A stretch of DNA of 62,854 bases, counting the filler, from Hyphochytrium catenoides (lineage: Eukaryota > Protista > Hyphochytriomycota), in NCBI GenBank assembly GCA_900088475.1. It is 6 parts of 6 records of this genome, joined end to end, with 100 filler letters (N's around TTAATTAATTAA, not from the genome) between each part and the next. Parts side by side here need not be neighbours in the genome. Positions count along the whole stretch, not along the records: positions 20,359 to 44,164 come from FLMG01000215.1; 5 more parts are not named here. One strand, 5' to 3'. The notes beneath the pieces are model-generated. The model made no database searches, had not been told where the DNA came from, and worked only from the letters and a program-made list of their open reading frames with translations. This document shows, piece by piece, positions 23,840 through 33,470 of the stretch. How positions within the stretch are numbered: the first letter of the stretch is position 1; each line of letters begins with the position of its first letter. Made by a program: the position numbers and the translations under genes.

Positions 23840-25414
23840 ATGGGCTTCTCTTTAAGGAATCTTATGACGACAGAAGATCTGAAGGCTTCCTTCAATCTCT
23901 TCTGCTGTGTCTATGGCATCGGTACATTGGGCATGCCTGCAAACTTTGCCCGAGCAGGGCCAGTAGCGGCTAGTTTGGCGCTCCTATTTATGGCAAGTGC
24001 GAATGTCTTTGCCTCGTTTGCAGTCAGCAAGGCCCTTCTGGCTGCACCACCGGGAGTGAGGACCTTTGGCGATCTAGGCGAATGGGTCTTTGGGAAAGCA
24101 GGGCGATGGGCTGTTAACCTTTCTCAGCTTGGCGTATGTCTGCTTGTACCTTGTGCCTTCCTGGTGCTCGGCTCAATCCTTCTTGATGTGCTCTTCCCGG
24201 ATGCGCTATCTCCGTATATATGGATAGTCCTGATGGCAATTAGTCTCACTCCATTCTGTCTCACGCCGACGCTGAAGGAAACAGCTGGTGCAGCCTTCGC
24301 TGGAGCCGTAGGAACTCTTCTAGCGGATGGGATTGCTCTAGGCATCATGTACTATTATTTAACTCCATTGAAGAGCCCGAGACCAGCTCCTGATGTGACC
24401 TTCGAACAGGTGATCGCAACTTTCGGTAACCTAAGTCTGGCCTATGGTGCGTCCATCGTCATCCCAGCTCTCCAACGGCAGCATTCAAACCCCAAGAGAT
24501 TGCCTGGCGTCATTGCAGGCACTCTGGCCTTCATCTCAGTCCTCTTCCTGATCATCGCGGTTACGGGATACGTTTTGGTCGGATGTCAAATCCCAGGGAA
24601 CCTTCTGTTCGCTGTCTCTGGGACGAGCTTGGGGTTTACGGCCTCCAGGGGCTCTATTGTTCTATCCTTCTTAGCCATGCAGCTCCACATCACAATCGCC
24701 TTTGCAGTCATCCTTCACCCTGCGCTTTATCTAGCCGAAAGGGCAATCCTTGGGCTGCACAGTTCTTCCCAAGGGCAAGGACAGCTGCCAACGCATTATG
24801 GCGCTCATGGAGATAGGACTGGCTATGGTGATAGGCATCGTGGTGGTATCGACAGCACTCATGGAGTAGGTATGGAGGTGACAACTCCAGAGATGCTGGG
24901 CTCGGCATCCGGGCGGCATAAGGAGCTGGCCTCTCCAGGAGGACTTAGAGGCAGCACTCGTCAAAAGAGTATCCATTCCATTGCATCCTTGGTGGACATT
25001 GCGGGTCATGATGAGGAAGATGAGGATATGAAGACCTATCGCCAACCGGGAGTGATGTGGAAGGTCACTTTGCTGCGCTTGTTCATTATCGGTGCTCTAG
25101 TTGCGCTTGCTTGTGGCCTCAAAGACCATTTCCTCGACCTCCAAGACTTCATCGGTGCTTCTGCGATGAGCGTTTGCTGCATCATCCTTCCATGTCTGTT
25201 CTATTTGAAGGTCTTCTGGCGGACGCTTCCCGTCTATCAGAAGGTTTACTTTGGCATCGTCGTAGTCGTCTGCGCCCTTGTAGGGGCATACTCGACCTAC
25301 AATGCTGGGAGAAAACTCTTTTTAGCCCCATCTAGCCCAAAGTTCCCCTTCTGCCCTGAGGGTGATTATCAGAACGTTGTCTACACCAACCAGACAGTGT
25401 TCCCGCTTAACTAA
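23840..25414 (+). CDS. Amino acid/auxin permease (AAAP, Aa_trans) family transporter; intronless, 524 aa
   Basis: About 11 TM helices. Motifs EDLKASFNLFCCVYGIGTLGMPANFARAGP, TFGDLGEWVFG, FGNLSLAYGASIVIPALQRQH, GCQIPGNLLF and FLDLQDFIGASA...ILPCLFYLK closely resemble the oomycete-expanded AAAP subfamily as I recall it. Confidence 0.92.
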   Translation: MGFSLRNLMTTEDLKASFNLFCCVYGIGTLGMPANFARAGPVAASLALLFMASANVFASFAVSKALLAAPPGVRTFGDLGEWVFGKAGRWAVNLSQLGVCLLVPCAFLVLGSILLDVLFPDALSPYIWIVLMAISLTPFCLTPTLKETAGAAFAGAVGTLLADGIALGIMYYYLTPLKSPRPAPDVTFEQVIATFGNLSLAYGASIVIPALQRQHSNPKRLPGVIAGTLAFISVLFLIIAVTGYVLVGCQIPGNLLFAVSGTSLGFTASRGSIVLSFLAMQLHITIAFAVILHPALYLAERAILGLHSSSQGQGQLPTHYGAHGDRTGYGDRHRGGIDSTHGVGMEVTTPEMLGSASGRHKELASPGGLRGSTRQKSIHSIASLVDIAGHDEEDEDMKTYRQPGVMWKVTLLRLFIIGALVALACGLKDHFLDLQDFIGASAMSVCCIILPCLFYLKVFWRTLPVYQKVYFGIVVVVCALVGAYSTYNAGRKLFLAPSSPKFPFCPEGDYQNVVYTNQTVFPLN

Positions 25415-26000: not shown

Positions 26001-27680
26001 TTATCGCAAGTGTCGCCGATAACCATCATCGGCTGGCGGGGCAGAGCAAATGTTGGCGGGAAGTTGCTTCCGCAGCTGAGCAACCACCTTATTCCAGCCA
26101 GGTTTGGGCTTGGCCTGAGTGATGCCGATTACGCCGTCTGCTATCCTTGCCTTAAGATTTTCGACCTTGTCCCAGGCCTCATCATGTCCGGTGGACCCTC
26201 CGCCAGAGCCATAGCCGGTGTCAGCAATGAGCTTCTTGCCAGTCAGGCTCGTCATCCAACCCCACTCAATGAGATTGTTATTATCACTCCTAATGCGCTT
26301 CATAGAAGCCTGGGTCCTCCCGCCACTCGTGTGGATAAAGTCAAGGTCGCTGGATTTGAAGTTGCTCCACCACGCTTCCTGCTGGGCACCGTTAACCCAA
26401 GGACTGATGTCCCACGATGTCTTAGCGTTTGGCAGCTCCTTCTTTATTGCCGCAATAATATCGTCGAGCAGTGCCGTCATCTCTTGCTTCTTTAGTCCTC
26501 CACCGCGCTGTACATACGTCTCGTGCTTGTTATCTGAGTATTGGTAGTAGTCGGGCTCCAGCAGCCAAATCATCATCGCATTCTTTCCGATGATCTTGGC
26601 TGTCTCTTTTGCATACTGCGCATAGGTTTTAAGGATAAGGTCGCGGTTTTTCCGGATAAAGTCTGCGCCTCCTTCGCACAGGGTTAAGCCTCCGGTGTCG
26701 CAGTCTCGGAGGCCTGCTTTGGCTCGACCTGAGAAGGCAATAATATAGCCGTAGTATACTGGTGTGAGCTTGTACTTCATCGCTGTCTCAAGCATTTTTC
26801 CATGAAAGTAAGGGTTAAAGTCAGTGCTCCCCGTTTCAGAATTTGGCGCGCCAGCCCAGACTGTCAGATAGTCCAAGCCTTCATAATAATCCTTCTCCCC
26901 ATCGTAAGACGTGCCGAAGTTGAACTTGCAAGGGTTGAAGCCTCCGGAAGAAGACACGCTCGTGCCATTAGAAGAAAGAGCTGGCTTGTTGGGGCTTGTG
27001 ACCGCTGGCGTAGGGGCAGGTGCCGGTCCGACTACGGGTGGCTTCGGCTGAGGTTTCGAAGGTGGAGAAGGAGGCAGTGGCGAAGGATAACTGTCTGACA
27101 ATGGCGGCGAAGGCAGCGAGGGATAGTCGTCTTTAGAGGGAGATGGGGATGGGGAGGAAGGAGGATGCAGTGGCGAAGGATAAGGTTCTGACATTGGTGG
27201 CGCAGGAACCGAGGGATAGTCGTCTTTGGAGGGAGATGGAGATTTGGGTGAAGGAGGAGGAGGGGGCGCTGGAGATGGCCCAAGAGGTTTAGGTGAAGTG
27301 CTTCCCCGAGCTGGTAGACATTGTGAGTACCACTCGCCAAAAGCCGTGCAAGTGTTACCAGGGTTGCAGCAGGTCGGGCCCTGCCACCCTTTGCCGCCGC
27401 ACTGGGCATAGCGTAGGGCACAAGCTCCAGAAGCAGATGAAGAAGAAGCGTCCGGTAGGCACTGTGAGTAGTAGTCATTCTGCACGACACATTTGGAGCC
27501 TGCCTCACAGGTCGTACTTCCTTTCCAGTTGATGCCCCCGCATTGCTCATATACATAGGAGGTAGCTCCAGACTGAGCCTTATCATGCCCTGATTTCCTT
27601 TTGCACCCGGCTGTAGCCGTTTGAGGAAGAAGCAAGGCTGCTGACCATAACAGCAGCCCTACACTGCGATGACTCAGCAT
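26001..27680 (-). CDS. Secreted protein with two CBM1 cellulose-binding modules, a Pro/Ser linker and an unassigned putative glycoside-hydrolase-like domain; intronless, 559 aa
   Basis: Signal peptide aa 1-24. CBM1 motifs [15 protein letters not shown]...NDYYSQCL and [15 protein letters not shown]...EWYSQCL. A Pro-rich linker is followed by a ~310-aa globular domain containing [25 protein letters not shown] and IADTGYG. Confidence 0.9.
27060..27250 (-). repeat. Coding tandem duplication (~96 nt, 32 aa) in the Pro-rich linker
   Basis: [25 protein letters not shown] versus [25 protein letters not shown]. Confidence 0.85.
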
Positions 27681-30323: not shown

Positions 30324-32571
30324 CTAGCTCGGGCGATTGACCTCATCCTTTATGATGATGGCATTATACTCAATGCTGGAATGAAGGGTTAGGAGCAAGT
30401 CTGGATGCCTGTAGACCTTGACGATGTTGCGCATTGTGTATATAAACAGGTTGAAGAGAGCATCCAATGAGGAGCTCGAAGGGGGCCGCGCAATGAAGGT
30501 GGCAAAGAGCGTCCAATCCTTCTGTTGCAGCGATGAAAGCGGTGTTTGCTTCTCTTGACCGCTGTCGCGACGCGACCGTGATGCAAGATAGAGAGCCAAG
30601 ATAATCTGGACAGCAGCGAGGAGAGAATTGCTAAGGACCACCCACTTTCTTCTACTCTGGGGAGGAAGGGGTATGGCATCTTGGGCTAAGAGTAGGGTCG
30701 CTGTGATCATGCTAATGGATCCTACAACCATTGAGCTAAGAGGGGTTGCAAGTGGGCAGTGAGTACTGTGCTAACATAATGAAGAAGAACAATCATATAA
30801 AGGTCGTACCTGGGACCCCAGCCCGTCAGCTGTCCTGCATAGTAAAATAGCTGGCCAGTGTTAAGTGACAGGAAGAGAACTTCGAAGTCCCTCAAGAGAA
30901 GCAGCAGCAGCTTTGGAACCGCCTTACTTAGGAGCAAAAGGTTACACAGGAAGCTCATCGCCAAGAAAAACCAGATGGCAACGATCGGCGCCTGACTGTT
31001 CACCAATAGAGCTTGAACTCCAATGGCAAAGAAGCTAGAGAGGACAAGACTCCTTTCCCTGCCAATGTGCATGAATCCGAGGAAGAGAGATGATGTCAGC
31101 AGGTTATCCTTCTCTCTATTTCCCTTCGATAACGGCTTGATATACGGGGAGTGCCCTGTCGATCGTTTATATCTGGTCCTAATGCTGTGATAAACATCTT
31201 CGTGTGGTGCTAGGAGCATCGTTTCCGCTATAGGATGAAGCGTGTAGCCTCTTCGTCCTCTTCCAGAATGAGCCCTAAGGAATGCAAGATGAGTGCACGT
31301 AACGGATATCGCATCCTCAACAGGCAAAGACTCGGTGGACGGAAACCCAACTTACCCTTTCGCTCGTGCAGGTCCCGTTACCTCGGCCTGATGAGCAGTG
31401 TGTTCCCCTACCTTCATCGACAAGCCGCCATCAGTTGACGTTGCGACTAATGCGTTGCGGCCCTGTAGCGCCTTGGCAGCACGGCTTGCGGGAGGCTTCT
31501 CTAACCCTTCCGCCGCTATTATTGTGTCACCGGTGGCGGCAGCAACTTGTTGGATCTGAATGGGCCAGCGGATAGTGACGAACCTGGATATTCCTTTGGA
31601 AGTGTTTTGGAGCTTTCCTAGCCACTTCGGTACAAGAAGGCAGCAGTAAAGGCCCAAGGCTAAGTTACAGTCTGCGGCTATGATCCATGGCCTGACCGGT
31701 ATGTTATAGATAACCAACTGCGTCATGCGGAGGTTTGGATAGACCTCCATGTAGAAGTACGTGGCAACCCTATAGTCAGACGACACAGACGATAAGCACG
31801 CGCAGCAGCCATCATAAGTAAACCACGTAGTAATGGACAGCGCCCACCAACGAGAAGAGCAGTAAAAGCACTTTACCTGATGAGTATATAAGTTCCAATG
31901 ACTGAACCTATCGCAGCGACAGCTGTCTTGCTCCTGGTATCAGTAATAAGCGGCATTGTATCTGACAGGGGAATGGCAAGGCCACCGCTAAATGTGAGGA
32001 GAGAGAGGCCTATGGCCTGCATGGACTCGGTCCCCGTCGCATGGTAGGCGTGATAGTTTAGCAGGATAAAGCAGGGCAGTACCTGCACCATGAAGAAGCA
32101 GGAGCTAAAGTCTCGCAGAATCATCCGTACCAGCGTGGTGTTGAAGTCTGGCATCGAGAAGAGGAAGAAGTAAGTGTACAAGATTCCTGAGATCACGGCG
32201 AAAGCAGCTTGAACTTCTTTCCCGACGTTTTCTAATGCAATTATGCTGCTAAGAGCACTGATGCTGTACGACACCATGATAATGACCGTCAAAGTCCGAT
32301 AGAATTTGCTTCGCCGAAAGCGCAGGAAACGTTGGCGGAACTTTGCTGGCATGAAGGCCACCGCGAGCGTCTCCCTGGCTTCAATGACAATATCCTCGTA
32401 ACCCGGCGCCGGACTTATCTTCCATAGAATGAGTGCAGAGGACAACGAGCAAGAATCTTGTGATTGAGAAGGAGGGGAAGAGGAGGGAAGATCTCTCTCA
32501 ATCGGCTGCTTCAGCCCAGCAGGAGGCCCGACTAATACTGTCGGAGCCACGCTCGCCGGTGTCTTTCCCAT
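30324..32571 (-). CDS. Uncharacterised multi-pass membrane protein, paralog A (4 exons)
   Basis: ORF pieces 31873-32625, 31352-31786, 30722-31327 and 30324-30731 join in frame across GT-AG introns (31770-31876, ~31276-31355, ~30737-30809). Two internally similar TM bundles carry MILRDFSSCFF and LLLRDFEVLFL. Conservation with paralog B supports coding status. The start codon (ATG 32571) is tentative. Confidence 0.75.
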
Positions 32572-33008
32572 GGTTCCGACAGGCAGCGAGGGCCGTTCTC
32601 TCTGAATAGTAGAGCTATGACGCACTGTGTGAGTTGGGGCGGGGTGCTCACATCCTTGTCAGGCCCGCTAGCTATAGGAAAAGCGGCATTCTCTACGATG
32701 ACGAGGCCTTTGGAGGAGGAGAGAGCTCAGAAAATCATTGGGAGCCGAGCGAGGGGATGAACGGGATCTGTGCAGGGAATGAGGCTGCCTGACTCCTTCT
32801 CTGTTCTCCGTCGTAGTCTTGACCACTGCAATATCCCAGCATATAGGTAGGAATCTATAGCAACTTAGTGGGAGCATCTAGCTTCGCTCTCAGCCTTGTC
32901 CGAGGCCGCGGGTCCATTGCTGCGAGCTAGCTAGATATCACGTCTTCCAGCTGTCTGCNNNNNNNNNNNNNNNNNNNNNNNNNNNNNNNNNNNNNNNNNN
33001 NNNNNNNN

Positions 33009-33063
<55 letters not shown>

Positions 33064-33270
33064 CAAAGATGCACACAGCAGAGAGACTAAAGCTAAAGGA
33101 GCAGAAGAAGAAAGACTTTTGAGTGACATTGATTCCTGACAAGATCGAACGGAAGACGAGCTGGACAAGTTTAGAGAAAGATAGGGATGAAGGCAGACAA
33201 ACGGAGGAAAAGAGTAGAACGAGTAAGAGGAGAGAAGAGACCGAGACGGAGAGAGCGATTGAATTGGAGA

Positions 33271-33301
<31 letters not shown>

Positions 33302-33470
33302 ATAAGAGAGAGAGAGAGAGAGAGAGAACAAGAGAGAGCGAGAGAGAGAACAAGAGAGTGAGTGAGAGCAAAACATGAGAGAGATAGAAAAATGGGAAGA
33401 GAAGAGGAGAAAGACAAAGAGAAAGAGAAGAGAGAGACAGACAGAGAGAGAGGGAGAGAGAAAGAGAGAA
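33009..33470. repeat. (GA)n-rich low-complexity tract
   Basis: Pure (GA)n at 33011-33060, followed by purine-rich degenerate repeats, next to an N gap at 32959-33008. Confidence 0.9.

Follow-up and report, generated by a model that had tools for sequence, protein, structure and literature searches.

A CBM1-bearing protein of Hyphochytrium catenoides carries a domain of a large unannotated family, a remote relative of GH6

The window analysed here is a 62,854-nucleotide stretch of Hyphochytrium catenoides DNA (assembly GCA_900088475.1; all positions count along this stretch), and our subject is an intronless gene on its minus strand whose product joins a predicted signal peptide, two family 1 carbohydrate-binding modules (CBM1) and a Pro/Ser-rich linker to a C-terminal domain of catalytic type (Table 1). 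This layout, put forward in an original prediction made from the DNA sequence, was recovered from the open reading frame (ORF) and from Pfam and Protein Data Bank (PDB) matches, and for the signal peptide by inspection. The motifs quoted in the prediction are present in the order given there, at residues 325-327 (RDC), 375-377 (EPD), 424-428 (DISPW), 451-454 (TSGG), 486-491 (ADTGYG) and 499-503 (HDEAW), and the range 26001-26950 to which it referred comprises the stop codon and residues 245-559. Compared with Pfam PF00734, the CBM1 pair gave two copies at E 2e-23 and 82 bits (cut-off 20.6), which places both modules in CBM1, and PDB chains of that family match both, with E of 1e-5 to 1e-7. Such an arrangement is, as had been proposed, typical of secreted cellulose-targeting enzymes, and the best explanation of the gene is that it encodes a modular, cellulose-targeted carbohydrate-active enzyme that is presumably secreted.

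In a second sample of the organism, contigs span the whole ORF, which is intact there and differs by 11 single-nucleotide substitutions and no insertions or deletions. The C-terminal domain accounts for just 2 of the 11, and one of these is a synonymous change in the codon of the near-invariant Arg512. Because the ORF is preserved in this second sample, and because between 84 and 124 homologues match the domain with E down to 1e-86 (see below), it does not represent a chance ORF. In the linker, two of the second-sample substitutions (27269 and 27278) lie just upstream of a 93-bp tandem repeat, which encodes a duplicated 31-residue unit of the Pro/Ser sequence.

Table 1. Features of the CBM1-bearing gene and conserved sites of its C-terminal domain (window coordinates).
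Feature	Position	Strand	Basis or remark
Complete intronless gene	26001..27680	-	559 codons plus stop; ORF list, homology over the catalytic-type domain, intact in second sample
Predicted signal peptide, residues 1-24	27609..27680	-	Basic n-region with Arg, Leu/Ala-rich core, T-A-T-A before predicted cleavage site; by inspection only
CBM1 module 1, residues 43-75	27456..27554	-	Pfam PF00734; PDB CBM1 chains, e.g. 6q8m, E 8e-8
CBM1 module 2, residues 88-122	27315..27419	-	Pfam PF00734, second stretch; PDB 5x39 and 1cbh, E 4e-7 to 7e-7
Pro/Ser-rich linker, residues 123-244	26949..27314	-	Translation
93-bp tandem repeat in linker, 2.1 copies, 31-residue unit	27069..27260	-	Tandem Repeats Finder, 83% matches, score 279
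Catalytic-type C-terminal domain, residues 245-559 (315 residues)	26004..26948	-	Barrel in AlphaFold2 model; unannotated family, a remote relative of GH6
Y312 (domain Y68), end of strand 3	26745..26747	-	98% conserved; aligned with Tyr of GH6 signature 1
R325-D326-C327	26700..26708	-	D in 208/209; D326 aligned with Asp of GH6 RDC
E375-P376-D377, directly after strand 4 (domain 127-130)	26550..26558	-	E in 208, P in 207, D in 204 of 209
D424-I-S-P-W428, end of strand 5	26397..26411	-	D 96%, W 97%; aligned with GH6 D-A-G-H-x-x-W
A-D487-T-G-Y-G, end of strand 7 (domain 239-243)	26208..26225	-	D 94%; aligned with GH6 I-D-T-S-R-N-G

The C-terminal domain is one of a large family that has no annotation and is mostly bacterial, found mainly in Fibrobacterota and Polyangiaceae. 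A word-indexed protein search returned 84 homologues of 34-50% identity, or 124 when longer proteins were allowed, whose NCBI names are limited to 'hypothetical protein', 'carbohydrate-binding protein' and 'InlB B-repeat-containing protein'; the best match overall is 50% identical, and no oomycete homologue of the barrel domain occurs among the named matches. An exhaustive profile search extended the family to 590 cluster representatives (clustering at 50% identity), of which 456 have E below 1e-10, and a scan of one genome per prokaryotic species identified 234 stretches encoding the domain. Among the best 80 of these 234, the label is Fibrobacterota for 66 (Fibrobacter, with the cultured F. 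intestinalis ATCC 43854, L068, among them, as well as Hallerella and Chitinispirillaceae) and 8 are assigned to Polyangiaceae, Sorangium or 'deltaproteobacteria', with two or more family copies in many genomes. Five near-equivalent loci (L055, L056, L063, L065 and L067), 37-39% identical to the query, were recovered from a single human-gut study, in bins that bear the labels Oscillospiraceae, Alistipes, Sodaliphilus, Methanomethylophilaceae and Eggerthellaceae; Fibrobacter-type contigs placed in the wrong bins are the most likely source, as opposed to real occurrences in the labelled taxa.

To place this family, we used Pfam (2025), NCBIfam release 20 (2026) and the PDB (2026) as surrogates for the dbCAN/CAZy models. 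No match was obtained in these three collections for the domain alone, for 57 relatives taken one by one or for their profile, the matches returned being noise (Spiralin, Cecropin, Max), and a profile search of all PDB sequences gave none at E 10; a strong full-length match to an established family, which would have spoken against an unclassified enzyme, is thus absent from Pfam, NCBIfam and the PDB. The statement that the domain fits no obvious CAZy family holds for these searches but not for profile-profile comparison, where homology to glycoside hydrolase (GH) family 6 emerged with probabilities of 91.5-94.8%.

For this comparison, a GH6 set was assembled by fetching metagenome genes with a DNA pattern derived from PROSITE signature 1 and filtering them for RDC...EPD, which left 87 ORFs; all 9 of the 9 tested match Pfam PF01341 (E 1e-56 to 1e-68), and one matches PDB chains of T. 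reesei Cel6A at about 1e-101. Aligning the family (209 sequences) to GH6 (70 sequences) with hhalign gave a probability of 94.8% and P of 4.9e-8 over 174 columns, and an independent profile-profile run gave 91.5% and E of 8.7e-7 over 169 columns. The corresponding controls were far lower, whether the family was compared with reversed GH6 (0%, 0.83), with a 14-sequence GH5 alignment (5.6%, 0.0069) or with one GH5 domain (hhalign probability 0.6%), or GH6 itself with GH5 (0.2%, 0.27). Masking the RDC and EPD motifs left the signal at 85.3% (6e-6), and when the domain was split, the N-terminal half alone matched GH6 at 90.7% (1.3e-6) and the C-terminal half at 26.7% (6.9e-4), in the same register. 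These comparisons show that the domain is a genuine remote homologue of GH6, a relationship that is new to this analysis.

The alignment pairs Y312, D326, D377, D424 and W428 with Y169, D175, D221, D263 and W269 of Cel6A, respectively, and D487 with the Asp of I-D-T-S-R-N-G. The first five, paired with residues of the GH6 catalytic centre, are 96-100% conserved in the family (n=209). Experiments on Cel6A support D221 as the catalytic acid; D175 is its partner and the base proposed to act through a water wire, and a part in ring distortion is ascribed to Y169 (PMC6091422, PMC2945327). The order of elements, and roughly their spacing, is also that of the GH6 enzymes T. reesei Cel6A/CBHII and Thermobifida fusca Cel6A/Cel6B, namely a strand-end Tyr, R-D-C, an interval of ~50 residues (51 here versus about 46 in GH6), E-P-D, D-x(2-4)-W and x-D-T. 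Moreover, fungal Cel6A has the same module order as the protein described here, with an N-terminal CBM1, a linker and a catalytic domain. The original prediction had considered the GH6 signature not recognisable, which is correct for the full patterns; GH6 was nevertheless dismissed too early, as an R-D-C core lies 51 residues before E-P-D.

We next considered the predicted structure. An AlphaFold2 model built on 57 relatives reached a predicted local distance difference test score (pLDDT) of 90.5 and a predicted template modelling score (pTM) of 0.90, and shows eight strand-helix units, as in the (beta/alpha)8 barrel that defines clan GH-A. Foldseek, a Foldseek-independent search of PDB representatives and a re-scoring of the Foldseek top 1000 all returned (beta/alpha)8 glycosidases of clan GH-A, in a flat ranking that includes GH53, GH35, GH26, GH5, GH42, GH164, GH113, GH10 and GH1. 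In the ESM Atlas, good matches (TM score 0.79-0.86) were confined to unannotated bacterial clusters, with GH26 and GH39/42 clusters at 0.60-0.65. The alpha/beta pattern and TIM-barrel-like fold expected from the sequence are thus borne out at the level of modelling and structure search. When conservation was counted over the 209 family members, the residues conserved in at least 94% (Y312, D326, E375-P376-D377, D424, S426, W428, G453, D487, W503, R512 and G516) were found to cluster where strands 3-7 end on their C-terminal side or just beyond, on the face that usually holds the active site in such barrels.

The proteins and loci in which relatives occur provide a further line of evidence. Among the 120 listed relatives, at least 18 are fused to CBM4_9 and at least 20 to CBM6; other fusion partners are CBM35, ricin/CBM13, F5/8-C/CBM32, BACON and type IX secretion tails, and CBM1 is carried by eukaryote-type relatives. 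One of the latter, from a metagenome (P0138, 914 residues), carries the family domain twice in tandem, together with four CBM1 modules. In two Fibrobacter-type proteins (P0166, 1888 residues, and L048:5926-10689) the domain shares one polypeptide with a GH5 cellulase, occupying the N-terminal position after the signal peptide, and GH5 genes lie within 6 kb of the family gene in 11 of the 80 loci. In a myxobacterial (Polyangiaceae-type) metagenome-assembled genome (MAG; L002:8001-17368), the family gene is followed in order by an unknown gene, a CBM4_9-GH9 gene, another unknown, GH48 and GH94, and in a second MAG of this type (L084:6001-12868) a GH9 gene stands immediately downstream. Gene order apart, the two loci share the family gene, a GH9 gene and two unknown proteins of 243 and 532 residues, which may be further uncharacterised cellulolytic components. 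Gene context was uninformative in two further family loci. Three Fibrobacterota MAGs (L001, L003 and L005) have a conserved neighbourhood around short, CBM-less family members, made up of GAF-domain histidine kinases, a FeeM/acyltransferase-like protein with a faint PilZ match and a haem-oxygenase-like protein.

The reading that we prefer, with a probability of roughly 0.6, is that the gene product is a GH6-like beta-glucanase, probably inverting, which is secreted, anchored to cellulose and part of an unannotated family; its secretion, activity, stereochemistry and substrate are those that we infer. After cleavage of the signal peptide, the two N-terminal CBM1 modules would anchor the protein to cellulose, and the linker of ~120 residues would tether the 315-residue barrel domain. 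The latter would hydrolyse beta-1,4-glucan or a closely associated beta-glycan by single displacement (inversion), as in the GH6 mechanism, with D377 of E-P-D as the putative general acid and D326 of R-D-C as its partner or as a base acting through water, while Y312 would distort the sugar at subsite -1 and D424 and W428 would line the substrate site.

Several observations weigh against this reading, most of them concerning the distance from GH6. The Pfam GH6 model PF01341 does not match the domain even at E 10, nor any of the 57 relatives at E 0.1, and a GH6 hidden Markov model (HMM) built here gives 6.0 bits to the 559-residue protein and 15.4 to the best family member, compared with a Pfam gathering score of 27; with profile-to-sequence scores this negligible (6 bits), GH6 family HMMs miss the domain. 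PROSITE-type GH6 signatures (V-x-Y-x2-P-x-R-D-C-... and [LIVMYA]-[LIVA]-[LIVT]-[LIV]-E-P-D-[SAL]-[LI]-...) are unmatched as written, only the R-D-C and E-P-D cores being present: the distance from the Tyr to the Asp of RDC is 14 residues versus 6 in the GH6 signature, a 14-residue helix being inserted between the two in this domain, and the residues around the second core, I-W-L-L-EPD-Y-Y, also depart from the pattern. For Ser181, which positions the nucleophilic water in Cel6A, there is no equivalent, and a near-invariant Cys, one of four conserved Cys in the domain, is aligned at its place, where it is probably disulfide-bonded to the Cys of RDC. Two further pairs, W503 with the Trp of WCN and D515 with the Asp of ESDG (the D401 equivalent), are of low confidence and topologically doubtful; we do not rely on them, since they come from the greedy alignment only and lie before strand 8 here but after the last strand in GH6.

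The predicted structure adds to these objections. GH6 enzymes fold as a distorted 7-stranded barrel, whereas the model is a regular 8-stranded barrel nearest to clan GH-A, with one strand more at its N-terminus than the GH6 alignment has, and no GH6 structure occurs among the top 50 matches in any of the three structure searches. The part of the chain after strand 7 is also far shorter than in GH6 and has no long tunnel-forming loop, so that the model suggests a substrate site in the form of an open cleft. Given the unmatched PROSITE patterns, the insertion between Tyr and RDC, the missing Ser181, the short C-terminal part, the 8-stranded model and the absence of GH6 from the top 50 matches, the domain is not a GH6 member by the usual criteria, and is best seen, from its sequence relationships, as a sister family or an extreme outlier of GH6. 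As regards function, the neighbours in the three Fibrobacterota MAGs described above are regulatory only and uninformative, and the CBM partners of Fibrobacterota members (CBM6, CBM35 and CBM4_9) are no less typical of hemicellulases than of cellulases, and therefore do not fix the substrate of the family.

Three other explanations were weighed. The fold would suit a retaining glycosidase of clan GH-A type, in which E375 would serve as acid/base after strand 4 and D487 as nucleophile at the end of strand 7 (the '4/7' arrangement), the resemblance to GH6 then being convergent or a very deep TIM-barrel signal. However, sequence identity to the clan (GH53 galactanases, GH5, GH26, GH35 and GH10) is just 7-14%, N-E-P is lacking, with Leu preceding the Glu, the strand-7 residue is Asp in 196/209 members and Glu in 4/209, and other hallmark residues of the clan are unrecognisable. 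On the strength of the strand-7 Asp, the missing N-E-P and the hhalign value of 5.6% against GH5 we rejected membership of clan GH-A, and we consider the retaining mechanism unlikely. A GH18/GH20-like, substrate-assisted reading of E-x-D was likewise dropped, there being no clan GH-K structure among the top structural matches. Alternatively, the enzyme might work as we propose but already be classified, as a deep GH6 subgroup, as a recent GH family that has no Pfam model or structure, or in the literature. New GH families are indeed created every year, yet NCBI names are uninformative, the profile searches of Pfam, NCBIfam and the PDB were negative, and full-text searches of open-access literature for a described GH6-like family found nothing relevant. 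Moreover, a survey of Fibrobacter carbohydrate-active enzymes reported no GH6 (PMC6291624), even though F. intestinalis (L068) carries the family. Prior classification thus seems improbable to us.

The explanation to which we give the least credence is a secreted barrel that is no glycoside hydrolase at all, for instance a transglycosylase, a non-catalytic module that binds polysaccharides or loosens the wall, or an enzyme whose target in cell-wall polymers is a bond other than a glycosidic one. CBM1 modules also occur on esterases and on non-hydrolytic proteins, many chemistries are known from TIM barrels (KDO8P/DAHP synthases are among the Foldseek matches), the three Fibrobacterota MAG loci have no carbohydrate-related neighbours, and, a point that also counts against our preferred reading, no activity is known for any member. 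Nevertheless, the near-invariant acidic and aromatic residues are located at the catalytic face of the barrel and coincide with GH6 catalytic residues, repeated fusion to a variety of CBMs and to GH5 is what one expects of a catalytic GH module, and a gene for the domain sits in a GH9-GH48-GH94 cluster, all of which speak against this explanation, and we regard a function other than that of a glycoside hydrolase as improbable.

Phylogenetic analysis was used to examine the origin of the gene. In a FastTree tree of 209 domains, the 559-residue protein falls in a clade of 25 rows with support 99, which holds every CBM1-bearing protein and every haptophyte protein (from Chrysotila, Calcidiscus, Prymnesium and Pleurochrysis transcriptomes); outside this eukaryotic clade, the family is bacterial. 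An IQ-TREE mixture-model tree of 80 rows likewise placed the 23 retained clade members on one side of a branch, with an SH-like approximate likelihood-ratio test (SH-aLRT) value of 90. As the protein sits in a clade of eukaryotic members, any transfer would not be recent, and the trees, being unrooted, fit one old exchange between bacteria and eukaryotes in either direction. A bacterial origin had been suggested on the basis of the missing introns. This reasoning is weak, since a neighbouring gene of oomycete type (see below) is also intronless and equal in G+C, and since the protein groups with eukaryotic members; the suggestion agrees, however, with the mostly bacterial make-up of the family.

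Fibrobacterota and Polyangiaceae are specialist cellulose degraders, and GH6 is a classical cellulase family for which we know of no sister family. A broader proposal, which we advance tentatively and at well below even odds, is that the domain founds an unclassified GH family sister to GH6, or is its first noticed eukaryotic member, that the Fibrobacterota members are GH6-type cellulases, and that the single eukaryotic clade, made up of haptophytes, protists with CBM1 and the present stramenopile, reflects an old inter-domain transfer of a cellulase. Were this true, GH6 would gain its first clan partner and the unexplained cellulolytic mechanism of Fibrobacterota would become directly testable. 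Fibrobacter has repeatedly been described as having no GH6, GH7 or GH48 exocellulases (PMC6291624), and a hidden GH6-like family with CBM and GH5 fusions would therefore be an obvious candidate for part of its missing machinery. GH6 catalytic-centre residues in a seemingly regular 8-stranded barrel would extend this enzyme class and bear on the origin of the unusual GH6 barrel. In terms of annotation, at least 590 representatives of 50%-identity clusters now go by the names 'hypothetical' or just 'carbohydrate-binding'.

For the source organism, the gene represents an enzyme predicted to be secreted and targeted to cellulose, to which none of the oomycete proteins in our search results corresponds; it could attack plant walls or the cellulosic wall of the organism itself. 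The nearest parallel in layout is found in oomycete CBM1 proteins such as CBEL, which are likewise secreted stramenopile proteins with tandem fungal-type CBM1 modules. In proteins of the CBEL type, however, CBM1 is combined with PAN/Apple modules and a catalytic domain is lacking, whereas the CBM1 pair described here is tethered to an enzyme-like barrel.

The neighbour at 23840..25414 on the plus strand is an uninterrupted ORF of 524 residues encoding an amino-acid transporter of the Aa_trans (AAAP) family (Pfam E 2e-45), whose named homologues are exclusively from oomycetes (Pythium, Globisporangium, Phytophthora, Saprolegnia, Aphanomyces, Albugo and Lagenidium), at just 44-52% identity. The transporter and the CBM1-enzyme gene, both without introns, each have a G+C content of 0.53, and neither the 559-residue protein nor the transporter has an exact-sequence match in a collection of 15 billion proteins. 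We take these results to reflect an oomycete-like stramenopile that has no close relatives sequenced in this collection. The remainder of this piece (28-44 kb) contains no long ORFs. On the minus strand at 30324-32625, a series of ORFs of 135, 201, 144 and 250 residues encodes hydrophobic, membrane-protein-like stretches and may represent a multi-exon or degraded gene; the two ORFs scanned, of 201 and 250 residues, have no Pfam match. Further along, a run of 50 N at 32959-33008 marks an assembly gap flanked by long simple repeats of GA/CT type (about 32930-33420), which give rise to spurious Ser/Leu-rich ORFs and to a strong GC/AT skew at 32359-33358.

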